Source of the DNA: Paragordius varius
Taxonomy: Eukaryota; Animalia; Nematomorpha
Reading direction: 5' to 3'
DNA: 64,000 nt
Assembly: GCA_964247055.1 (NCBI GenBank)
Contig: OZ176059.1
Location: 2,728,001-2,792,000 of the forward strand
Made by a program: the position numbers and the translations under genes. The stretch's first letter is position 1, and each line of letters starts with the position of its first letter. The notes under the pieces are model-generated. The model saw nothing but the letters and a program-made list of their open reading frames with translations. It ran no database searches and was not told the origin of the DNA. This document shows, in pieces, positions 5,104 to 64,000 of this stretch.

Positions 5104-5662
5104 TTATTTGGTTTTACATTTATATATAAAGTAAGACATCGTTTCTTTCTCGCATATGGGTATAGTTACGAAATGATCTGATACAATCTATAAATATAGG
5201 GACAATATTACATCAGCCAATTGAGTTTTGGTTAAACCAGGCTTGTTATGTAAATTAAAATATTTTTTATAACGACGAAGCGTTTTCATAGGCAAGAGTA
5301 CAAAATCTGGTTTAAATGCCCGTTTTTCAGTTTCTAGAGTTTTCACATCTTTTTTCAGAATTTTTTTACCACCAGATAATTTAGCTAGAAGTGATTTATG
5401 CATATCACATATATAGATATGTTGAGCCTATTATAAATTAATTATATATACATTTATATCAATATTTATGTCGAGTCCTTTAGCATCAACAATCTTCTTG
5501 ATCCGTTTATTAAAACTTGCGTTTCCAGCGATTTTCTGACATCTAAACGCATTTTAGAGGAAAAGTCTAAAATATACACAATTACTTGTTACCATTATAT
5601 ATCAGCGAACATATTTGTTCATTTTCAACAGCTTCCGACTGATTTAAATCTTCAAATTCCAT
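5104..5662 (-). CDS. SAP30: SAP30/SAP30L-like Sin3-HDAC complex subunit, 155 aa; complement(join(5104..5187,5212..5427,5452..5542,5586..5662))
   Basis: The spliced product has the SAP30 zinc finger (CSLIYNGNKCQKIAGNASFNKRIKK...AQHIYICDMHK) and the Sin3-binding domain (TLRRYKKYFNLHNKPGLTKTQLADIVSDHF..IPICEKETMSYFIY). Exon lengths 77+91+216+84=468; GT-AG introns of 43, 24 and 24 nt. Confidence 0.92.
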
Positions 5663-6263
5663 ACATTATGGAAACGAAAAAAATATTTATATAATATAAC
5701 AAATTAATATAAAATTATATGTACGGTATTATGGTATAGTTTGGTAGTATATAAAATTATAATGGTATACAATGCCTCCATAATATTAAGCAAACATCAC
5801 GTGATACCACATTATAACAATTTGATTGGTTTAAAATATATATAAACGAATCAAAAAAGTCGACAGCGCCTTATATTTTCCGTTTATATAAATATATCTA
5901 CCATTGTAAACAGTGTTATATCTCTCTATACATATACAATTGCGCCTTGCTTATAATATATTACTTATCCCAATTGCTTATCAGTACTGTTAAACTCTAT
6001 TACCTATTATATTGCTATCAAGCTTTTACCATTGGATTTTTAACATTAGCTTGCTAGTTATACCGCATATTCAATTCGGGTAATTATTAATTTTAACTAA
6101 ATTTTGGATCTGTAAATAGTATAATACCATGTATTATGTAAATTTAGGCCTTAATTATCGATTATTTTTTGAATAAATTGAATAGTTTAAAATTTTTTGG
6201 GAATTTTCTCTTTTTTTAAATTATCGTCAAATACATTTTCCTCAACCGTATTTAGCAATTTAA
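5663..6263. promoter_or_regulatory. Probable bidirectional promoter region between SAP30 and HMGB
   Basis: Divergent ATGs about 600 bp apart; palindromic E-box tcacgtga near 5797-5804. Function inferred from the layout only. Confidence 0.5.
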
Positions 6264-7226
6264 ATGGGTCGTGGGGATAAACCTAAAGGAAAAACAACCG
6301 CTTATGCGTTTTTTGTACAAACATGTCGCGAAGAACACAAGTCAAAGTACCCAACTGACAATGTCATTTTTTCGGAGTTCTCCAAAAAGTGTGCTGAGAG
6401 ATGGAAAGTAAAACATAAAATTAATATATATAGACCATGACGAACCCAGAAAAAAGTCGATTTCAAGAAATGGCCGATAGAGACTCGGAACGTTACAAAA
6501 GTGAAATGGCAAATTATGATGGTGGCGAGAAAACGAAAAAAAGAAGGAAAACCAAAGATCCAAATGCACCAAAACGTGCACTGTAAGTTTCATTGCGTAT
6601 GTTTAGTTTTATCAAAATAATCAAATACATCTAATAGGTTTATACCCAATTTTTCTTTTTTTGTTAACTAAAATAGTTCGGCTTTCTTTCAATTCTGTAA
6701 TGATGAACGGCCTAAAATTAAGGCGACTGACCCAAAACGTGCTGTCGGCGATATTGCCAAAGAATTGGGCCATCGTTGGGCCAATTGCCCCCCTGATCTC
6801 AAACTCAAATACGAACGATTGGCTCAGAAAGATAAGGAGAGATATATGAGGGTATGTATACGTCTGCTTTTTTACATTAAACTTTTAAAATTATTCTAAC
6901 CATGTATATATGTATTTATTTAATTTTGCCTATATAATAGGAAATCACTCAATACCGTGGAGGAGGTGATGCGAAAATGAATAAAGTTGTAAGTCGCCTT
7001 TTTTTACTTTTCATCCGTATATATGTTTGTAATCATTTTGTTTTGTGTGCTTTTCCAAGTTAGTAGTAGTGATTGAATTAATAAGGGTTTGTTGATTCGA
7101 TTCAACTACATAACCTAACTTATAAACTAATTATGCCATTTATTTTGTTGCTGTATTTGTGTTTATGCGTTGTTGTGTACTTTGTAACAGGCTAATCACG
7201 AATCGGATGACGATGAGGAAGAGTAA
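6264..7226 (+). CDS. HMGB: HMGB/DSP1-type double HMG-box protein; join(6264..6407,6434..6582,6677..6851,6941..6988,7191..7226)
   Basis: [26 protein letters not shown]...[16 protein letters not shown] (box A), [25 protein letters not shown]...AKELGHRW (box B) and a short acidic tail ESDDDEEE*. Phases are consistent; intron 1 is 26 nt. Confidence 0.94.
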
Positions 7227-20857: not shown

Positions 20858-23800
20858 ATGTTTATCTGCTCAATATCTCACAAATATTTTAAATTATTAC
20901 CATTTTCATTTCTATTGTTATGTTTTTCCACACGGAGTCAAGATGTTAATGATTGTTATGACCGTAATAATAGACCTCAAAGATGCATGCCTCCCTTTCA
21001 AAATGCTGCATTTAACATTCAAGTCAATGTAACAAATACGTGTGGCGAAAGGTACCCCATTGAATATTGTCTTCAAACGGAAGCCCATGGGCCTAGCTCG
21101 ACTTGTCGCGCATGTGACAGTCGATTCCCAAATTTATCTCATCCTGCTGCATATTTGACAGATTTTAACAATAACGATAACTTAACCTGGTGGCAATCTG
21201 AAACTATGTTACAAAATATTCAATATCCGAATTCAATTAATTTAACCCTTAATTTAGGTAATTAAAATGCTTTTTGTACTAATGCCACAATACAGGGAAT
21301 ATATATTACCCATTTATTTATCAATTAGTAACTCCTTTTTGTTTTACGTGAAAGTTTTTTTTTTGAAATCCATTGCTTTTATATGTTATCCCCTGCGCCT
21401 TTATTGCACGTTGGAATTAAATAACGTTATCCAGATTGCTTTTGAAAATTTTTTTCCATTCCATTCCTTTCCCCCTATTTAAATTATCCCCATGAGAAAA
21501 AGCAAAAAATTATACATATATGTGCATCTTTTTTATCCATTCTCTTATTAGAAAAATTTATTTATAGAGTATAATTTATTTTCCTATATAGCCAGGCCAG
21601 AAATGAAGAGTTTTAAGATCACACAGTAGCGTATGCTAACAAACATCAAATGGTTGAAATTAAACCATTTTTCCTATGTTTTTATAATTTTTTATACAAT
21701 AATAATGGACAAGCTTTGTTATGCCCCATACGCTACTGTATAAAAAGTTTTATATTTACATTTCTATTTGTTGTTTTTGCTTTTATAAACTTCACAACAT
21801 TTCCAGATTCCTACATGTGCCGGAATATGCTAGATTTTTGAACCCCATGCATAATTACTACTTACTGTATAGTTATATAGAAAAAACATATGGGGATGAT
21901 ATTTATTGTTTGATAAAATGTATAAAAGTGAAGATTTTTTAAAAAAACATATTGGGAAGAAAGTTACAAGTTTTTGCTTTTTTTGAAATAAATTTTAATA
22001 AGCTGTGTTTTGCGAAAAAAAATTTTTTTTATTTATTTCTTAAGTATAAATACCGACCGCTCGAAAACAATCGCATTGTAATAAGTGTATTTGAGTTTTT
22101 AATTAAAATTTATAACATTTTGACCATTTTATTTTACATTTCTTTGAGGAAAAAAATTAGGCAAAAAAGTTTACACCAACATATGGTTTAAAACATACTT
22201 TAGGTTAAAAAACGATTTTTCTTTATATATTATAATACAAATTTATTTTTTAAGGATAGAGTCTGAATATACCATACCACATAGTACCGTATAAAAAAAA
22301 TTATTCGGTTTAATTATGCTCACTGTTAGAAATGCAAAATAAAAAGAGACAAATGTCGCAATGTGTCCCCTATGTCTCCTCTTGACCATTAACAAATAAT
22401 TATAATGCATGTGTTTGCCTATAATTATATACATTTTAATTTATATAATTAGTAATTAGCACACATGTGCCCATTTATAAAGGTATTTTTACATGTATAC
22501 ATTATAGTATTTTTGTAAAAGCAGAATTTATTTTGCTTAATATATGGCAATAAAATAATACAGTATGAGTAAGTACAGTATATGACATAAAAAGATGATT
22601 ACACACATGTACTATTCGTAATTTATGTTTAAAATTTTACTTATTTATAAACTATAGGTAAATCATTTGACATAACGTACATACGGCTTAAGTTTCGATC
22701 CCCACGGCCCGAAAGTTTTGCCATATATAAACGGACCGATAGCTCTAAGCGTTGGCAACCATACCAATACTACAGTGCTACGTGCGAAGAAACATATGGT
22801 CTCCCAACTTCCACAATCATCCCCGAGGGACAAGAAACGACCGCCATTTGTACGTCAGAATCGAGTGACATGTCACCCCTGACGGGTGGAAATATAGCTT
22901 TCAGTACGCTCGAGGGACGTCCCAACGCCTTCAAATTTGAGAATAGTTCTATTCTCCAGGTTACATAATTTTTTATTAAAAGGCAATCACAGATTATATT
23001 AAAACCTATAATTGTTTTGGATTGAAAAGGAATATGGAATAAATCTATATTGATAATTCGCTCAATTATTTATATGCTTAACAATAAAACAATCAAGGAT
23101 CCATTAGATGTGATGTTTTGTCTTTAAAATATTAATTCTTATTTGCATATATATGTATATATAAGGTGTCGAAAAGTTTGGGTTGATTATAATATTTGTA
23201 GGGGTTTCATGAATCTGGAAAAATATCTAAAGCCGCTTACATAAAAGAATTTTTGCCACATGATGTTTATATGTATGATAAAGTAGCGTATCGTATAAAT
23301 ATTTCTTGTTGTAATGAAGTATTTGCCTATATACTTGATACATGGATACAACACATTCATTTCAGCCCTTCGATTCGAATTGGGGTCGTTTGATACCCCA
23401 AGCCTGTTTAAAATCAAATTCTTCAAAAAATATGGAAGAATTGGAGCCATGTCAAAAATTTGCACTTATATAACATTAATGAACTGATATTAAAAAAAAT
23501 TTATTGAATACTTGATATTACTTAATTTAATGTAAAACCCAAAGATAAAAAAGTTAGTCAAAATGACATGCGTTTATTAGCTTAATTTAAAAATAATAAA
23601 AATAAACCACTTTTTCTCCAAAAAATTAGCTTTTATTTTAGCTTTGAAATTAAAAAAGCCCGATATTTTGCAAAAATGTTGTAAAATAAAAATGGCGCCG
23701 AAGTAAGTAGTTTGTTCAATACTAAATTTTATTTAGATTTATATAAGTTTTATTAGGATAGAAGTATATACTAAAATTGTTTTCATTCACTAGTTTTTTA

Positions 23801-26800
23801 ATATCAATTTAAATATAATTTGGGGTATTTACCCAATTTGAATCGAAGTGTTTAGAAATGTAAACTTTTCTTTTTTATTGCAGCACCACACAAAATTAGA
23901 TCGATCAACTTTGTATAATAATACAAATTTTGGGACTGATATTTAAAAGATTTTTCAATACGTCGGTTTTAGTTCCGACTAGGGTTGTGCATTTGACTGC
24001 TTTTTCAAAAAAGTCCGGTCAGACCCAGTTATTTTTACCCATTTAACGAAAAAAAAATTTTGATAAAATAAAGGATACATGACTGTATTATCAAAAAATA
24101 CCCTTATGAACATAATAACATATATATAAATTTATTTAGTTTACTTTTAATTTTGTAAATTTTAGCTAATTTTATACAATGAGTGTTAAAAATCATGTAT
24201 TATTTTTGGCCTTTTACCGCTCGAAAGGCAATGTTACTTCACCGGTTTTGGAATCTGCAAGTTGTCCAAATATTTGTCGATATAAAATTTTAAATTTTAT
24301 CAACAATGGTTTTAATGCAAATTGTTTCTTATATACCATTTACAATTTATATTCACCCTTAAACAATTCAAATTCACCCTAAAAATAAAAAATATGTGCT
24401 TTCGGAGGCTAATATAACTTATCATTTATATGAAATATATATTTATGGGCATTGTTTATTATTTTTTCAGTATTATTTAATTTTAACAAAGCTTTATTTT
24501 ATTTAAAAAATATGAAAAAATATAAGTAATTTTTAATTTTAAAAGACACATAATTCAATTTAGGGTGGATTCAAATTGTTCAAAGGTGTGAATTGAGGGT
24601 GAATTTGAAGTGTAAACCGTATAATTAACTACGATATTTCTTGTAAAATAATTGTAATTACGGCGGATGTTTGTGTTAATTTTTCCACATATTACACACC
24701 AAATAAATAGTTTAGTCCAGTTTTGATCTAAGAAATCAGATTGTATAACTCTAAATTGCACATATAACAATAAAAAGAGATGAAATGTTGTTTAATTATA
24801 AAAAGAAAGTAAATATTGTTTAACAATAATCGACACCTCAAATTAATACATAAATGTAAGGCAACATTAATTGACCTGCTCATGTTTAAAACATTTTAAC
24901 TTACGTGATTTGAAACTACACCAAATTTTTTTTTTAGTTTTGGAAATAAAATAAATACGTTTTGCATGCTAGGAATGGGTAACGGCCACCGATATTCGCA
25001 TAGTACTGAATCGATTGAATACGTTTGGGGATGAAATCTTTAATGACACTAAAGTGCTCAAATCCTATTATTATGCCATCTCTGATTTCGCCGTGGGGGG
25101 AAGGTACATTTATTCATTTTTTCATCTACTGCATATTTTTTCCATCCTTAACTTTTAGTGTTCAAAAATAATATTCTATATTAGTTTGGGATATTATTGA
25201 TGAAAGTAATAACCTAATATGAGTAAAGATGTAAATTCAGTTTAAGTTACCCTTGAACAATTCAAATTCACTCTAAAAATAAATTATGTGTCTTCGAACT
25301 AATATACCTCATTATTAATATGAAATGTAAGGCATAATTTATTATTTTTTTAGTATTATATTAATTTAAAAATATCTAAAAAGATAGGTATTTTTTAATC
25401 TTAAAAAACATATATTTTATTTGAAGAGGAATATAAATTGTTTGAGGGTGAAGTTAAATTGTTCAAGATAAATTTGAATTGTTTAAGGGTTAGTTCGATT
25501 TGAATTGCAAATGGTATACATTGTTAGTTTTTATTTAATTTTGCCTGATATATGCAGCAGCAATAAAAGGCACTATATGTCCTCTTTGCTTTATAATAAT
25601 GCTTATCTGGCAAAAATTTATGAAATAAACTAGCAATGCATGCTTATTCCTACTCTATATCAGAATTTTAAAGTAACTTAAGATTATAAGTTTACCTTTT
25701 GAAGGTGAAAATGAAAATTTTGACTTTAAAAGTCACCAGCTTTTTTATTACTCAATCAAGGTTAAAATGGGTAAAAGTTGATGGTGAGTAAACTGCTTTA
25801 TTTGCACACATATTTGTGATTTATGATATAATAACATAGAAACTGAAGATTGGTAAATTTTTTTGTTAAATATTGTTATGTCTGTTTTTTTTTTCATTTA
25901 AAATAACCATTATTTTTTGTTTTAACACAATTGTTAGTCCTTAAAACTAAGTGCTGTGCTTGTTCAAATTAAAAAAGGCAGTGTTGTAAGTGATAAAATG
26001 TGGCCTTTAAAAAATAAAATCCTGCTCTAAACTAAAAGTTGCCATTTTCAATATACCTCGGAAGGGAAAAAATGTTACCTTACGAAAAAATAATGTCATT
26101 TTCAATATCCAAGAAAAAATTTTGTCTTTTCATTCAAATGCTGTTTTAAATATACTCTACAGTTCAATTTCACCCTTAAACAATTCAAATTTACCCTCAA
26201 ATAAAATATATGATTTGGAGATTAAAATTTACCTATATTTTTATATATTTTAGAAAAATTAAAATTTTGTTTTAATTTAAAATAACACTGAAAAAATAAT
26301 AAACTCTGCCATAAAGATATATTTTATATCATTTAATGAGTTATAATAGTTCGAAAACACATAATTTATTTATGGGGTGAATTTGTGAATTGTTCGAGGG
26401 TGAATTTGAATTGTTCGAGGGTGAATTTGAATTGTTCGGGGTGAATTTGAATGTTAAAAGCAGTATATATATATATTTTCTCGATCTAGATGCAAATGTA
26501 ACGGACACGCCAAGGAATGCGTCCCCTCTACGGGTGAAGGTTTACCCCAACGTCTTGTGTGCCGTTGTGAACATAACACAGCTGGGACGGATTGTGAGCG
26601 GTGTGCCCCGTTTTACAATGATAGACCTTGGCAACGAGCCACGTTATTCAATGCGTTCGAATGCCTGGCCTGTGATTGCCATGGGCTTTCGGACCGTTGT
26701 TACTTTGATGAGGAAATGTATCGGAGAACGGGACACGGTGGTCATTGCATCGAGTGTCAACGGAATACGGATGGCCCACATTGTGAAAGGTGTAAGGAGA

Positions 26801-39700: not shown

Positions 39701-42700
39701 ATTGGCTTTTGATAAGGCTTTGGCTCTATACCAGGAAGCCCTTGAACTTAAATTACCCCCCACTAATGATATGACTGACCTTGTAGCACAAACCGATGAC
39801 TTAACTGAACAAGTAAATTATTTTATATTTATTTTTTAACTGTTGGAGTAATTAAAAATTGAAATTATGGATTTTTTAGGTTAAATTATAGTAAAAATTT
39901 AAAATTTATATACAGACAAAATGTAATTGTGGGAGCATCCAAAACTATAATTGTGTTAAAAAAACTTTTTTTATAGTTCTAAGTTTTGTGTTTAAAATTT
40001 CAATTTTTATAATTTTGAGAGGGAGGAGGAAGGGGAGTCTCACTCGTTTAAAATAATATTATTAGTAAAATGGTAATATATTACAGTCATGCTCTTTTCC
40101 ATTGAACTTAACTATCTCATATTTGCAAAAACATAAGTATTTGCATTATAATCCTACGAAAACAATTCTTAATAAGGGGGTCTTTTCCATTGAACTTAAC
40201 TATCTCATATATGGGAATACATAGGTTTTTGCATTATAATCCTACGAAAACAAATCTTAATAACGGGGCGGCAAATACTTAAAAAATATAAACTGCAAAT
40301 GTTATCGAAGAAAATATAAAAATTAAATCATAAATTTTATTTTTTTTATTACACATAAGACAAATGCCATGATGCCCGTGATAGAAGAAGTGCTTACCGC
40401 TAACGCAAATCTCATGAGCCGTGCCAATGAACGCGTTCAACTGCTCCGTCAGCTGTTGGAACAGGGGTCAGCTGCGCAGAGTGCCACAGAATCAGCTGGT
40501 CAAGCAGTTATGGCTGCCCGTGCCCGTTCACAACAAGCTATCGCCGCGGCCGAATTAACACTTCGTGAGGCTCAACAAACGTTAAAAACCCTTAAAGGTA
40601 TGACTATTAAGACATGCATATATATATTACAGTTGTGTAAGGTAGATGGTTGGTTGGTTGGTTTTTCCTAAGTCGTAAACGACTTTTTGGATATAGTTTT
40701 AACTATTTCTTTCATTTTTTTCTATCTTTAACCGCTATATTGAGCTCTTTCAGTGTCATTTTGGTCTCTTCCTTTATCATATCCAACCACCTCATCGGTG
40801 GTCGGCCTCGTTTCCTTTGCCCTTCTACCTTCCCAAACATTGTATCTTTCTCCAGCGAATTTGATCGCATGACATGACCAAAATATGTTAACTTTCTTTT
40901 TAGAATTATCTCCATGATGTTTGTTTTAGGTTTTATTTCTGTAGTTAGATTTTCATTCTTAATTTTATCCTTCCAGGTGTATCCTAGCATCCTACGCCAG
41001 CAACTCCTTTCAAAAGCCATGAGCCTTTCTTTGTCCCTTTTTCTGAGAGTCCAACTCTCACATCCATATGTAGTGACCGGGAGAACGAAACAGTAGAGTA
41101 ATCTTTTTTTGGTTTCAACTCCTACGCTTTTGTTTTTCCAAATCTTTGTTAATTTTGTCATCGCTTCTCTGCCCAATCCTATTCTCTTTCTGATGTCAGG
41201 AGTTGAAGACCCATCCTCTGAAATTATTGCGCCCAAAAACGTTAACTGTTTAACTATTTCAATTTCTACTCCTTCTATTATAATTGTAGGCTTTTTTCCT
41301 GTACATAATATTTTGGTTTTGTTAGGATTAAGCCTAAGACCATACCTCAAACTTTCCTTTCGAATCTCTTCAATCAATGCCTTCAAATCATTTGCACTTT
41401 CAGCTATAAGAGTGGTATCGTCTGCAAACCTTAAATTATTGATTGTTCTCCCTCCTATTCTTACTCCAATATTTTTACCATCCAACTTCCTCATTATCAT
41501 TTCTGTGCACATATTGAACAGATAAGGGGATAAGCAACACCCTTGTCTGACTCCTTTCAAGATTGGTATTTCGTCTGTGTCCCCCGCTGGTGTTCTAATA
41601 ATCGCTCTTTGTTTTACATACAGAGAGCTAATCAATCTTATTAAGTGAGACGATACCCCTACTAACTTTAATGTTTCCCACAAGGAGTCATAGTTAATTG
41701 AATCGAATGCTTGTCTGTAATCAATAAAACACATGTATAATTCTTTCTGAAACTCTTTTGATGTTTCCATTATCCTTCTCATGTTTGAGATATGGTCTCT
41801 TGTGCTTTTTCCCTTCATAAATCCGGCTTGATTTTCTGGTATTTCTGTCTGTATGATACTGTGCATTCTGTTTTGTATTACTTTTAGTAAGACCTTACTA
41901 GCGTGGCTAATAAGAGATATGTTCCGATAATTCTCGCATTGGAGTACATCTCCTTTTTTATATATTGGGAGATATACAGATGATGCCCAATCGTTTGGCC
42001 ACTCACATGTTTCCCACACCTTTTGACATAACTGGTGTAACTTTTCAACGGGAATAGCTTTTATGAACTCTATTGGGATATTGTCTAATCCCATCGCTTT
42101 GTTGTTAGGAATTTGTTTTAAGGCTAATTCAACCTCCTCTCTTAATATATCTGGATCACGTTCTTCGTCTTTTAAGTGCAACACCTTTGCTTGAGGAGCC
42201 TGATAGAGTTTTTGGGTGTATTCCTTCCATCTTTCTCGTACTTCTGTTTGTTTGCACAATATGGTGCCATTCTCTTTTTTAATCTTTTGTGATGATATAA
42301 AAGGTTTATGAGTCATTTGCTTCAGTTTCTGGAACATTGGTTGCATTAATCCTTTTTTGTTATTTAATTCCACTTCCAAACATTGTTTATTAAGAAAATC
42401 TTCATAATCCTTCCTTGTTTGTCGTTGAAATTCTTTGTTATATAATTTAACCATTTTATTATCACCTCTTGATTTAGCTTTTCTCCTCTTTTCTGCTATC
42501 TCTATACTCTCTTCTGATATCCATTTGTTATCTTTCCTCTTTACTCTCTGCACTTTTTCTTTTGCCACTTCTTTAACAACATTTTTTATCGTTCCCCATA
42601 ATTGTTCTGAGCTACATCCATTGTCCAATCTTCCTAATCTATCTTTGGTTTCTGTTCTAAAACTATTTGGAATGTTCCGAGTGTCATATCTGTATATCTG

Positions 42701-45229
42701 TTTAACCTTATTTTTGATTATTTTAAGTTTGATTTTGGTTATTAGAAGCTCATGATCGCTAGAGCAATCGCTGCTTTTATTTGTTTTGGTATCGATTATA
42801 GAGCTTTTCCATTTTTGAGGACATATTATGTAATCAATTTGATTCTTATATTTACCACATGGAGAGGTCCATGTGTATAACCTCCTATTGTGTTGTGGAA
42901 ACCATGTGTTGGTTATCATCATCTCATTTTCTTGACAAAAATTGATCAGTGCTTCCCCGGCCTCGTTTCGTTCTCCCAATCCATATGGCCCGACTATTTG
43001 ATCTACTCTACCTCTACCAACTTTGCTGTTCCAATCCCCTCCTATGATAATCATATCTCCTTTCTTCGTTTCATCCAAAACTATTTGCAACGTTGCATAA
43101 AAGTCCTCTATGTCTTCTTTGGGAGCGTTTGACGTAGGAGCATAGACTACTATGTATGTAAATTTAAGTGGCTTGGCATTCAGCCTAATACTCATGATTC
43201 TGGGTATATATGGTGTATAACTAATGAGACTTTTATTTAATTTGTTTTTTATTAATACTGCAACGCCTTCAGATTTCAGGTCATCTCTCCCCGATCTTAA
43301 CAATGTATAATTTTCGTTTTGTACTTTCGCGCTACCTTTTTGCTTGGTTTCCGTTAGACCCAGTATATCTATGTTCAATCTTTCCATTTCCTTTTCAATT
43401 ATCACTTGTTTGGTTGATGTTAAGGAACGTACATTCCAGCATCCAACTTTGAAAATTCTTGTTAAGTTCATTTAGTAAAACTATTTTTTGGCAGTAATAA
43501 ACGAGGGTGGTTTGCCATTGCCTTCCCTCTCACTTACCCTCTTTACAAAAAATAAATATCTATAATTAAAATTAAAGAGTAATCTTTATAAATGTTGTTA
43601 ATTTGGATAAATTATAAATATTAATATTTCACTCTGTCTGGCCATAAAAGAAAAATATAAAGAAATTATGGCTAGGCTAGTAAAAATAAAATAATTAGGC
43701 ACCAAGGAGTAGAGAAAAAAAAATATATAGATATGTATAACAATGATTTTTGATGACTTAAGAATTATGTTACTCTTTAAATTACATACTTAGCATACAA
43801 ATAAAATAAAAACTCTACAAAACAAAGAAAAAGATTAATAATTACTAAAAGGAAACTTATTTTTTAAATATATTTATAGTATATAATAAAAAAAAAATAC
43901 TATCCTTGAATAACTTGCCGCTATCAATCACATGGTTTCATGCATGATTATATGATAATTTAATAAACAAAATTAATGTTAAAATATGGGGAAAATATTG
44001 TTTTATTTCAAACATTTGTTCTTTTTACCATACGCTACTGTAATATACAGTATGGGTAAAATGCATTGTTTTTAGTTATACCAAAATTGTGCTTCCAGAT
44101 AGCATATACATCAAAGGGTTATACAATAAAATTTGAAATTAAACGGACATAACGTTAAGATATGAAGACAAATAATTTTTCCAAAAGACAAGCATACTTT
44201 TTAAATCATGTTTTTCTTAATGTAACTTATTGTTTTAAACTGCAAAGTCTCAATTAAATGTAAATTGGGACCATAAATTTTACTATTCAAATGTTTTTTA
44301 TGGGATAAAAGGTTGAAAAACTATGGTTATCTTTTAAAAAAATAGTCTTAAAATTTTACGTTTTATCCCTATAATTTTAATTTTTATGCTGTATATGCTA
44401 TTTTTCAGTCATATTTGATCAAAAACTAGCATTGTATATTTCATTAAAACTGTATTATTCATTGGACTTTTATTCAAGGACAACAGGTTTTTTTAATTTT
44501 ACATAAAATTTATATATAAGATTTTTTAAATCAAAGACAGACCACAATTTTTTGTTTAATACAACGGTGTTTAATATAAGACGATTGGTGACACAAGATT
44601 TTTCGTTTAAAAATAACACTTTTTATTACTATAATATATCTAAAAGCAACCTCCCTTTTCTAGGGGTAACATATAAGAATGTATTGAAATAATTTGGTTT
44701 TAATTGTTTAAGTCGGTATGTTAAAATTATTTTTTAATTGAAATGTTGTTTTCTTATGAAAAATCCTCTTAAACAAATATTACTGCATGTATATTTGTTT
44801 GCTAATTCAAATCATACGTAATACAGGAAAATTTACTGTCATGCATTATTTAATTAAACATTTCTTTTTACTTTCTTTGCCGTCTCATCAAGATTTTGAC
44901 AAAGAAATGAACAGTCATAGCGCATCAGCGGCCTCAGCCCTGGCCCAAGTCCCCCAAATCCGGTCTCTTATCCAAGAAACGGAAAGTAAGCGGGTAGAAA
45001 CCGAACAAAAGCTGCTCGCCGCCCAAAGTGATATGGACGGAGCTAAGGAACAAGCCATTGAAGCCAGAGATATCGCTGAAACTATTCGTGAAGTTTATTT
45101 TTTGATTTAATAAAGGAATTAATTTACTAACATGTTTTTGGAATAAGTTTAATAAGGTTGACATACTCGTGGTTTTTTTGTTCACTAGAGAATTGTAAAT
45201 TATATAAGGTTTTTTAAGGAAATATTGTA

Positions 45230-60426: not shown

Positions 60427-63400
60427 ATAATAATCATCATCATCAATCAATCATCATCAAGTCGTTGTTTGTCCAGCATGTGCCAGCTTCCAAATTCTTG
60501 AGCGAAATAGCTTGCGATCGAGACAATCGTCTTTGTTCAGTTGAGTTAAGTGTAAGTCATTGCTGAGTGTTTTTTCCCAATCATGGTATGGTCTGCCTCG
60601 TTTTAAATTGCCGTTCGGATGAAAGGATCTAATTTTGTTAATCCAACTATTTGAGCGTTCAATGTGACCCCAGTATCTGAGACGATTTGCTCTGAGAAAA
60701 GAAGACATAGGTGCGATATGAAACAGATTATGTATGCTTTTATTATTATTTGTTTTATCATTGTGATACTGATTGGTGAGGCATGAGTTGAGGATTTTTC
60801 TTTCTATGTCACATAATTTATTTTCATTAGTTTGGTTTAAGGGCCAACATTCGCTAGCATAGGTGAGGGCAGGGCGAATGGCAATCGTGTAGATTTTGCC
60901 CTTGTTTGGGTTTGAAATGTGTTTGTGTTTCATTATATACTTGAGTTGATGAAATTTGGCCCAAGCCTGATGTGACCGTGTTGTTATGGCGTTTTTAATA
61001 TTCATATCAGCTGCTATTGTGTCACCCAGGTAATTGTACTTGTTTACTATTTCGATGTTTGTAGTTGGAAGGTAGGTGGTTTGTGTGGGATTATTTGGGT
61101 TTATATCTGGTGTTGCACAAGCTTTACATATAAAATTTTCAATTCCCAATAAACTTCCTTTAATTTGTGAGCACTTTTTATGGACCCACAGCTGGCATTT
61201 AGTGCATTTGATGGAATTAAGTTTCACTTCAGAGTGACAAATGGAGCAAGGGAATTTTATTACAGGTACCGGTGAGCCTGTTATTAAAGTCTTTGTTTTA
61301 TCTGTGTTAATTTTGAGGCCAAATTTTTCTAAAGTAGATTTCCAGAGGTTATATTTATTGATAATGTCTGTTTCGCTGGTGGCTGTTAGTATTATGTCGT
61401 CAGCGTACATCATCTCAAAAGGTAAACCTGTTTTTATATTATCAGTTATTACATCCATAATGATGATAAATAGTAATGGACTGAGGATGGAGCCCTGGTG
61501 TAGTCCGACAGTTACTGGAAATTGATTGGTATCACCCACGGGAGTTCTCACGCAACTAGTGGTGTTCTCATATAGTAAGTTTATTATTCTTATTATCCAT
61601 TCCGGGATTTCTTTTTTTCGTAACGCAAATGTGATCATGGACCGCGGGATGCAGTCGAATGCACGGCTTAAATCAATAAAGATGTGATATAAGGTTTTGT
61701 TTTTGCATCTGTAATTCTCTTGTAGCCTTCTAAGAATGAATATGGCGTCAGAGGTGCTGATCCCCTGTTGGAAACCGAATTGGTTTTCGTCAATCGAGCA
61801 AAGCTGACGTATTTTCTTTTCTATAATTATTTCGAATAATTTGGTTGCGTGTTCAAGCAATTTTAATGGTCTGTAGGAGGCGCAGTTGAGCATGTCGCCT
61901 TTGTTTTTATATATTGGAATTATGACACTTTGGTTCCAGTCGTTCGGGATTTTTTCCTCCATTATAATCAGATTAAATAGCTCTGTGAAATAGGTAATTG
62001 CTTCAGGAATATTTTTGTACATTTCAGTTTTAATTTCCGTTGGACCAGATGCCTTATTGATTTTACATTTTTGCATGGCTAAGCTCACATCTTCTGCAGT
62101 AATAATTGGGGGTGGCCCAATAACTGGAGGTAAGTTTGGGATCTCGACATTTGAATGCTGGAAATTCAGTGTATTTTGCATGTATTGTGTCCATACATTT
62201 TGAATGCTAAGAGTGTCAGTAACTGTGTTGTTATTTTTATCTTTTATGGCTTTCACTACCCAAATATCTTTTTTATTATTATTAATATTTTTTAGTGTTT
62301 TAAAAACTTTTAAGTTTTTAATTTCTCCCTCAAGTTTTTTGGCCATTTCCAAACATCTTTCATTCATTTTGTCAGCTATTATTTTCTTTACTCTTTTTTT
62401 AATCATTATGTAAAAATGTTTGTCATCATCATGTTTAGAAGCTTTCCATTTCTTAAAGGCATCTCTTTTCTCATTCAATAAGGGTTTAATATCGCTTTGC
62501 CACCACCATTGAGATTTTGTTTTGGTACGTTTTCTTCCGCAGATTTTGGAAACGTTTGAGAGAAGGGTGTTTTTGAGATGCTCCCAGCCGTCATGAACGT
62601 TGTTAGGGGAATGTTTTAGTTCAGGTGTAATTTGGTTGATGTATTGATGCTTTGTTTTAGGATCATTAAGTTTTGCAACGTTAAGTTGTGGCAATTTTTT
62701 AGGGCTAGGTCGGTTCTTATTTATTATTAAAAAAGCAACTATTAGTTTATGTTGTGTATCATATTCATAAGTTTTAAAGTTGGTTATAATTTTTCTAAGT
62801 TGTTGGTTCAGCAACACAAAATCTATTTGCGATGTGTGATTTCCGCTTTTATATGTGTGGATTTGGCTAGGTTTTTTACAGAAGTGTGTGTTGCAAATCA
62901 ATAAGTTTGCGGCACTGCAGAATTCCAAGAGGGTTTCGCCCTCTTTGTTGCGAGAGCCAATACCTACTCCACCGTGTATACCTTCATAACCATCAGCGTG
63001 CATTCCAATGTGTCCATTAAAATCTCCGCCGATCAGAAGTATATCATTTGTGGGAACATTTTGTGCGATCTGATAAAGCTGATTCCAAAATTCCTGTTTG
63101 GTAGTTTCATTTTGACCCTGTTGAGGGGTATAGATGGATAGTATGTTAAGGGTGGTATTATTGAGAGCCACTCGCATTTGAATAATTCTGTCGCTGTGAC
63201 GTGTAATGTCAATTATATTATCTTTTATCTGATCGTTTATGGCTATTGCTACCCCTGATTTCCCTGATTTTCCTCCTTCATAATACAGTGTAAAACCTTC
63301 ATGTTGATAATTACCTCCGTTTTTAAAACGAGTTTCTTGTAAACAACATATGTCAAGCTTTTGTTCTTTAATCGCATTTATTATCATCCAAGCTTTTCCA

Positions 63401-64000
63401 ACAAGAGTTCCGACATTCCATGTGCCAAATTTAAAGTTATTATTTTTAATATTAAATGATTTTTTCTCCGGTAACATTTCACTTTTTCGTAGATGTATTA
63501 TTTAAAAATATAATTATTATTATTATTATGCAGTATAAAAATATATAATATAAAGTTTCAAAGACGCTTTTATAAGTAGTATTTATTTATTATTATTTCG
63601 CTGTTGAACATGGTAAAAGTAATGAGGCTTGATTTTTATAGACTATATGCCCTTATAGCCAACCTCTTAACTCGGAGGAGAGAGTACCTTATTCGCTGTA
63701 CCAGGCTAGAGAGTGTCTAAAAAGACTTCGAATCTCTCAATCCGTTTGTAGATTTAAGTCTACGGCCGAGGGAGGTGCCTTTCTGGGCTTTGGAAGCTCC
63801 CACTCCATCTTTCGTTTTAAGTACTTATATTATCGTTATTATCATCTGGCTGCTGGTTATAGCGCCCAGATAAACCCGCTTTAAAACCATGTGTGTGAAT
63901 ACAGGCATTGTGGTATTTTGTAAGAAAATGAGACAGCCAATCTCAATTCCGCCACGCCCCACACACTAGTTTTCCTCCTTGTGGATTGATGTTCGTTGAC
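60427..64000 (-). mobile_element. Long-ORF RTE-like LINE antisense to DUS1L; the 5' UTR probably runs to or past the window end
   Basis: (tga)n-type tail at about 60427-60457, intact ORF, and a GC-richer structured region at 63600-64000. Confidence 0.85.
60457..63477 (-). CDS. AP endonuclease + reverse transcriptase polyprotein with an internal C4HC3 (PHD-like) finger, 1006 aa
   Basis: FGTWNVGTL, CCLQETR, IGGDFNGH, QIDFVL; GLHQGSILSPLLF, MYADD; CSIC..CTKC..HKKC..CKAC at 61117-61248. Confidence 0.93.
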   Translation of the reverse strand: MLPEKKSFNIKNNNFKFGTWNVGTLVGKAWMIINAIKEQKLDICCLQETRFKNGGNYQHEGFTLYYEGGKSGKSGVAIAINDQIKDNIIDITRHSDRIIQMRVALNNTTLNILSIYTPQQGQNETTKQEFWNQLYQIAQNVPTNDILLIGGDFNGHIGMHADGYEGIHGGVGIGSRNKEGETLLEFCSAANLLICNTHFCKKPSQIHTYKSGNHTSQIDFVLLNQQLRKIITNFKTYEYDTQHKLIVAFLIINKNRPSPKKLPQLNVAKLNDPKTKHQYINQITPELKHSPNNVHDGWEHLKNTLLSNVSKICGRKRTKTKSQWWWQSDIKPLLNEKRDAFKKWKASKHDDDKHFYIMIKKRVKKIIADKMNERCLEMAKKLEGEIKNLKVFKTLKNINNNKKDIWVVKAIKDKNNNTVTDTLSIQNVWTQYMQNTLNFQHSNVEIPNLPPVIGPPPIITAEDVSLAMQKCKINKASGPTEIKTEMYKNIPEAITYFTELFNLIIMEEKIPNDWNQSVIIPIYKNKGDMLNCASYRPLKLLEHATKLFEIIIEKKIRQLCSIDENQFGFQQGISTSDAIFILRRLQENYRCKNKTLYHIFIDLSRAFDCIPRSMITFALRKKEIPEWIIRIINLLYENTTSCVRTPVGDTNQFPVTVGLHQGSILSPLLFIIIMDVITDNIKTGLPFEMMYADDIILTATSETDIINKYNLWKSTLEKFGLKINTDKTKTLITGSPVPVIKFPCSICHSEVKLNSIKCTKCQLWVHKKCSQIKGSLLGIENFICKACATPDINPNNPTQTTYLPTTNIEIVNKYNYLGDTIAADMNIKNAITTRSHQAWAKFHQLKYIMKHKHISNPNKGKIYTIAIRPALTYASECWPLNQTNENKLCDIERKILNSCLTNQYHNDKTNNNKSIHNLFHIAPMSSFLRANRLRYWGHIERSNSWINKIRSFHPNGNLKRGRPYHDWEKTLSNDLHLTQLNKDDCLDRKLFRSRIWKLAHAGQTTT

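Follow-up and report, generated by a model that had tools for sequence, protein, structure and literature searches.

Probable spliceosomal introns of 24 nucleotides in the SAP30 gene of the horsehair worm Paragordius varius

How short can an intron be and still be removed by an animal spliceosome? Introns below about 30 bp were previously thought to be absent from animals (PMC13644364, September 2026). In that survey of 51 animal genomes, introns shorter than 30 nt were found only in myxobolid Myxozoa and in Dicyema japonicum. The ultra-short introns of these animals keep little more than GTa...AG as splice signals and contain an A-rich stretch; the U2 is canonical. Further cases were predicted in other parasites (PMC13644364).

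The SAP30 locus of the horsehair worm Paragordius varius raises the same question. Here a sequence-only reading of the window (the whole 64,000-nt stretch of DNA that was analysed) had noted two strings on the minus strand, 5451..5428 and 5211..5188, each 24 nt long, each bounded by GT and AG, and each containing in-frame stop codons; re-reading the sequence agrees. Are these strings introns, and would the spliceosome that removes them also handle introns of a very different size?

The SAP30 gene occupies positions 5104-5662 of the minus strand and comprises four exons, from an ATG at 5662-5660 to a TAA stop at 5106-5104. Exon 1 (5586..5662) encodes MEFEDLNQSEAVENEQICSLIYNGN plus two bases of a split lysine codon, and supplies the first zinc-ligand cysteine. 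Intron 1 (5543..5585) is a GT-AG intron of 43 nt in phase 2. Exon 2 (5452..5542) encodes the first part of the zinc finger, matching positions 15-44 of the zf-SAP30 profile, and is followed by intron 2 (5428..5451), 24 nt long, GTA...TAG, phase 0, with in-frame TAA TAG. Exon 3 (5212..5427) contains the end of the zinc finger (YICDMH), the linker, and positions 1-28 of the Sin3-binding domain profile. Intron 3 (5188..5211) is likewise 24 nt long, GTA...TAG, and in phase 0, with an in-frame TAG. Exon 4 (5104..5187) completes the Sin3-binding domain (profile 29-53), and its last codon is the TAA stop. In all, about 155 codons are open, in DNA of 27% GC where a random frame closes roughly every dozen codons.

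Each exon was searched singly against Pfam and solved structures; exons were joined only in a local enumeration of junctions. Exon 2 scores 27.3 bits with the zinc finger profile PF13866 (zf-SAP30), above the cut-off, and the match carries on into exon 3. The exon translations keep all four zinc ligands (C, C, C, H), in ICS..NKC and YICDMH. With PF13867 (SAP30_Sin3_bdg), exon 3 scores 32.7 bits and exon 4 scores 27.2 bits, both above cut-off; a genomic read-through of the locus reaches 56.3 bits. The carboxyl-terminal Sin3-interaction domain also aligns to the solved structure 2ld7. A word search with exon 3 (72 aa) among proteins of 40-126 aa, a range that excludes full-length SAP30 proteins, returned no candidate. 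Vertebrate SAP30 and SAP30L have four coding exons (PMC2711940). The hairworm gene shares this number, as well as the order of C2CH zinc finger, linker, and Sin3-interaction domain; unlike the vertebrate proteins, the hairworm protein is short (about 155 residues) and lacks the long amino-terminal extension.

How exact are the two 24-nt junctions? At intron 2, exon 2 covers zf-SAP30 profile positions 15-43, its 30th residue falls at position 44, and exon 3 begins by taking up the profile at 45-62. At intron 3, the end of exon 3 covers SAP30_Sin3_bdg positions 1-28, and exon 4 covers 30-53 from its second residue (the first falls at 29). The solved structures divide in the same places. On the human zinc finger (2kdp), exon 2 aligns to residues 16-43, with two further residues reaching 45, and exon 3 to 46-65; on the Sin3-interaction domain (2ld7), exon 3 aligns to 23-53, with one further residue reaching 54, and exon 4 to 55-79. 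By two independent measures, then, there is neither a gap nor a surplus residue at either junction. The motifs that removal of the strings had been said to restore, IDIN/AQHIYICDMHK and QLAD/IVSDHF (slashes mark junctions), are present in the exon translations, and profiles and structures run through them gap-free. Read unspliced, the frame meets TAA TAG inside the first 24-nt piece and TAG inside the second.

Might introns of ordinary size be used instead? Every canonical GT-AG pair that keeps the SAP30 frame open was enumerated. Longer pairs do exist: the next-shortest are 63 nt at intron 2 (5490..5428), and 60 nt (5237..5178) or 63 nt (5211..5149) at intron 3. Their lengths resemble those of the genome's ordinary short introns (69-94 nt). 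If they were used, the SAP30 protein would be short of 12-13 residues per site, and the 24-nt solution would be merely a model on paper. However, those residues are conserved with human SAP30 and align to conserved positions in Pfam and in the solved structures, and without them either the zinc finger or the Sin3-binding helix would be incomplete. Such a stretch would not have remained open and conserved had it never been translated. At each of introns 2 and 3, the 24-nt pair is the sole one that retains all aligned residues; the other frame-keeping pairs each cost at least 12 conserved residues. All tests at the level of sequence agree with the earlier description of the 24-nt pieces as obligate. 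Intron 1 yields to the same procedure: one of its five frame-keeping GT-AG pairs, that at 5585..5543, retains both cysteines of C-x8-C, consistent with the 43 nt first assigned to it.

A 24-nt string with GT and AG ends means little by itself, because such 24-mers are common in a window of 27% GC. On both strands together, the window contains 236 GT-N20-AG 24-mers (0.0018 per position), and 19 of the stricter GTA...TAG form (0.00015 per position). Two such 24-mers placed exactly on both profile breaks of one 560-nt gene, at phase-0 borders, are far beyond chance.

SAP30 is not the only gene so divided. Head to head with it, about 600 bp away (window 5662-6264), an HMGB gene begins at an ATG at 6264 on the plus strand; the arrangement suggests a bidirectional promoter shared by two chromatin proteins. 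The first HMGB intron (6408..6433) is a GT-AG intron of 26 nt, not a multiple of three, and the HMG_box_2 profile continues across it: positions 2-43 on one side, (44) 45-72 on the other. The next two introns are longer: 94 nt (6583..6676), an ordinary short intron, and 89 nt (6852..6940). Elsewhere in the genome, HSP70 and CCT genes were screened for one long open frame, and all proved to be split by introns. An HSP70/BiP-like gene on contig C4 has introns of 23 and 28 nt (YS/CVGV and FPYT/IKEK), followed by one of 69 nt; a CCT gene on contig C6 has one of 24 nt, followed by introns of 71 and 73 nt. Lengths below 30 nt between conserved exons are therefore 24 and 24 in SAP30, and 26, 23, 28, and 24 in HMGB, HSP70, and CCT. 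Among the introns measured in the genome, 6 of 15 are this short. A purely computational length histogram, built by bridging frames across 129 kb, scored TG...GA and GA...TG decoys as high as GT...AG.

In this small sample (n = 6), the 5' end is GTA in four introns and GTT in two, with no G at position +5; the 3' end is TAG in all six, and the interiors are rich in A and T. The requirement for introns of 23-28 nt in three other genes, including a frame-shifting 26-nt piece in HMGB, also weighs against longer introns in SAP30. We consider it very unlikely that longer introns are used there.

Both 24-nt pieces are multiples of three whose only stop codons are TAA and TAG, with no TGA, and a ciliate-like code had to be excluded for this reason. 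If TAA and TAG were read as sense codons, the pieces would simply be 8-residue insertions in the protein. The window itself provides the test, in the form of two intact LINE open reading frames on the minus strand, each encoding APE and reverse transcriptase: one of 1006 aa (60460-63477) and one of 919 aa (40715-43471). Neither contains TAA or TAG, although their own composition predicts about 55 in each, or about 109 in 1925 codons. TAA and TAG are thus true stops in the genome, which uses the standard stop codons, and an alternative code was rejected on these grounds. Sense codons would also leave the HMGB piece of 26 nt and the HSP70 pieces of 23 and 28 nt to break the frame, and would insert residues into the zinc finger and into the Sin3-binding domain. 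The probability that the pieces are translated is close to negligible.

Other matches in the window and in these frames are minor. The 1006-aa frame has a weak PHD-finger match after the reverse transcriptase domain (E 3e-4, under cut-off). For one further open frame in the window the match is dihydrouridine synthase (Dus, E 1e-4), and for another it is a reverse-transcriptase fragment.

With the stops real, the locus might instead be a decaying or unexpressed pseudogene, in which the 24-nt pieces are insertions that disrupt it; the in-frame stops of the unspliced reading are what such a gene would show. The rest of the evidence points the other way. Both SAP30 profiles, searched against the whole genome (110.6 Mb), find one locus only, that in the window; a second zinc-finger match (E = 0.14) is under cut-off. 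The partner protein is retained as well: the Sin3 core domain (PF08295) is present with a single match in the genome, 50.9 bits at C6:9631400-9631519. All four SAP30 exons are open and conserved, with the zinc ligands intact, and each insertion falls at a phase-0 codon border, with exact GT and AG at its two ends. The same class of intron occurs in the essential genes HSP70 and CCT. Moreover, the locus is not a processed copy, because introns are present. A single copy, a retained Sin3, some 155 open codons, and the presence of introns together make the pseudogene reading weak, and we regard it as very improbable.

Two stop codons, TAG and TAA, lie inside the 40-residue Sin3 core-domain match, a signature shared with the SAP30 micro-introns. 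This is probably another tiny intron.

Could the pieces be removed otherwise than by splicing, either eliminated from the DNA in the manner of ciliate IESs or bypassed during translation? Sequence alone looks the same whenever the removal takes place, and ciliate IESs are similar in length. The borders differ, however. Ciliate-type elements have TA at both ends, whereas the SAP30 pieces read AAT/GT...AG/GCT and GAT/GT...AG/ATT, with GT...AG rather than TA...TA. Ordinary GT-AG introns of 43-94 nt lie in the same genes, and U1, U2, and SF1 are present and canonical. We know of no DNA-elimination or bypass mechanism of this kind in an ecdysozoan. IES-like excision was set aside as unlikely given the GT...AG borders, and the wider proposal of elimination or bypass is extremely improbable.

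The sequence-only reading had suggested inspecting snRNAs and splicing factors, and the inspection revealed canonical components. The U1 snRNA gene is full-length (124 bits) and begins with the canonical ACUUACCUG. The U2 snRNA gene is full-length (178 bits) and carries the GUAGUA branch-point box. SF1, the branch-point factor, is present in the genome. Nothing in these three components suggests an unusual spliceosome. U2 has 46 matches in the genome, most of them clustered on contig C3 (257000-530000). Many are degenerate, at 38-125 bits, and this pattern points to a large array in which U2 copies are decaying.

Taken with the junctions, these components lead us to conclude that the 24-nt pieces are very probably genuine U2-type GT-AG spliceosomal introns in the single-copy SAP30 gene of a nematomorph. 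Their removal would be from RNA, by the spliceosome. An unspliced SAP30 transcript has a premature stop, because the two introns are in phase 0, are multiples of three, and end in TAG.

How might such introns be recognized? The 23-28-nt class is probably removed by an otherwise canonical spliceosome, beside others of about 40-100 nt and others measured in kilobases. Recognition probably occurs across the intron, from minimal signals: an initial GT followed by A or T, and a terminal TAG. The A-rich middle would supply the branch adenosine, probably about 7-10 nt before the 3' end. SAP30 intron 2, read directly, contains TTAAT, in which one A lies 10 nt from the 3' end; intron 3 contains no clear yUnAy branch site, the weak candidates being A15 and A17. 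An intron of 24 nt is too small to include a polypyrimidine tract, and U1 and U2 snRNPs could not lie next to each other on it in the way they do on long introns.

Long introns are close at hand. The Laminin_N profile is split on the plus strand into positions 1-89 (to about 21259), 88-190 (22654-22959), and 191-233 (24973-25101). The intervals correspond to introns of about 1.4 kb (21260..22653, between profile positions 89 and 88-90) and about 2.0 kb (22960..24972, between 190 and 191), their ends being approximate. A gap of about 4.9 kb (39836-44760) contains a LINE and is a candidate intron only; the 919-aa LINE frame is flanked by laminin-side open frames and is probably intronic. The claim that introns of several kilobases share the window with the tiny ones thus holds in part: two laminin introns, one near 1.4 kb and one near 2.0 kb, do coexist with them, but none above about 2 kb is demonstrated. 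That one spliceosome handles both extremes of length is likely on this evidence from genomic sequence. The first laminin coding exon (20859-21259) contains the signal peptide and the start of the amino-terminal domain, and the 1.4-kb intron follows directly. Because this first intron is long, tiny introns are no general rule for gene 5' ends.

Tiny introns are well known in protists and reduced nuclei: about 25 nt in Paramecium, 15-16 nt in Stentor, and others in microsporidia and chlorarachniophyte nucleomorphs. The hairworm introns resemble these in length range, in GTA...TAG ends, and in the in-frame stop carried by introns whose length is a multiple of three. The settings differ. Those genomes are protist or organelle-like, with near-uniform intron length and, in many ciliates, reassigned stops; the hairworm is an animal, its stop codons are standard, and very long introns occur in it too.

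Among animals, the nearest likeness is to the myxobolids (Henneguya salminicola, Thelohanellus kitauei, and Myxobolus spp.), in which the median over all introns is 22-27 nt, with Iso-Seq support (PMC13644364). Shared features include GT-AG introns of 20-30 nt whose signals are close to GTa...AG and which are A-rich ahead of the 3' end, as well as canonical U2 snRNA, an AT-rich genome, and a parasitic way of life. In contrast to the myxobolids, the hairworm is an ecdysozoan with a transposon-rich genome of 110 Mb, its tiny introns stand beside others of 43-94 nt and of 1.4-2.0 kb, and they are known here from the genome sequence. Dicyema japonicum (PMC6736024, cited in PMC13644364) also is a parasitic animal, and most of its introns are GT-AG introns shorter than 30 nt at conserved positions. 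It is a spiralian with a compact genome in which nearly all introns are tiny, whereas in the hairworm they are one of several size classes. The likeness to dicyemids and other tiny-intron organisms proposed at the outset therefore fits the literature (PMC13644364).

The mitochondrial contig and base composition agree with the host. Contig C44 (15.7 kb) encodes a COX1 with six in-frame TGA codons, as in the invertebrate mitochondrial code. Its many palindromes, 104-416 nt long, are perfect and have no spacer, and most lie within open frames (218-343 codons, code 5). Long perfect inverted repeats within mitochondrial protein-coding genes are reported for Nematomorpha (PMC6649704), and the coding palindromes of this contig match that signature. 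Just upstream of COX1, within an 855-codon frame (code 5), lie tandem palindromic units with a 72-nt period (L022, 6752-7451). GC content is 27-30%, similar to that of the hairworm Gordionus (26.9%).

The 51-genome survey of ultra-short introns (PMC13644364) says nothing of hairworms, and the paper on the Gordionus genome says nothing of introns. Our literature search on hairworm intron length found nothing relevant, although a remark on the subject may stand in the Current Biology report of two further hairworm genomes.

The SAP30 introns appear to extend the known animal ultra-short introns to a third lineage. A broader claim is more tentative, and we put it forward as a possibility that may well fail: that introns shorter than 30 nt arose independently in horsehair worms, as the third animal lineage to have them, and the first in which the same machinery splices a discrete class of them and kilobase introns filled with transposons, within a non-compact genome.

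If a gene finder accepts no intron shorter than about 40 nt, genes like hairworm SAP30 will be broken up or overlooked, so hairworm gene sets, and claims of gene loss, need to be re-checked. Introns of 24 nt and 2 kb on one stretch of chromosome provide a natural system for asking what minimum intron the spliceosome needs. Finally, a third lineage that is ecdysozoan and has a non-compact genome would decouple the miniaturisation of introns from the reduction of genomes.
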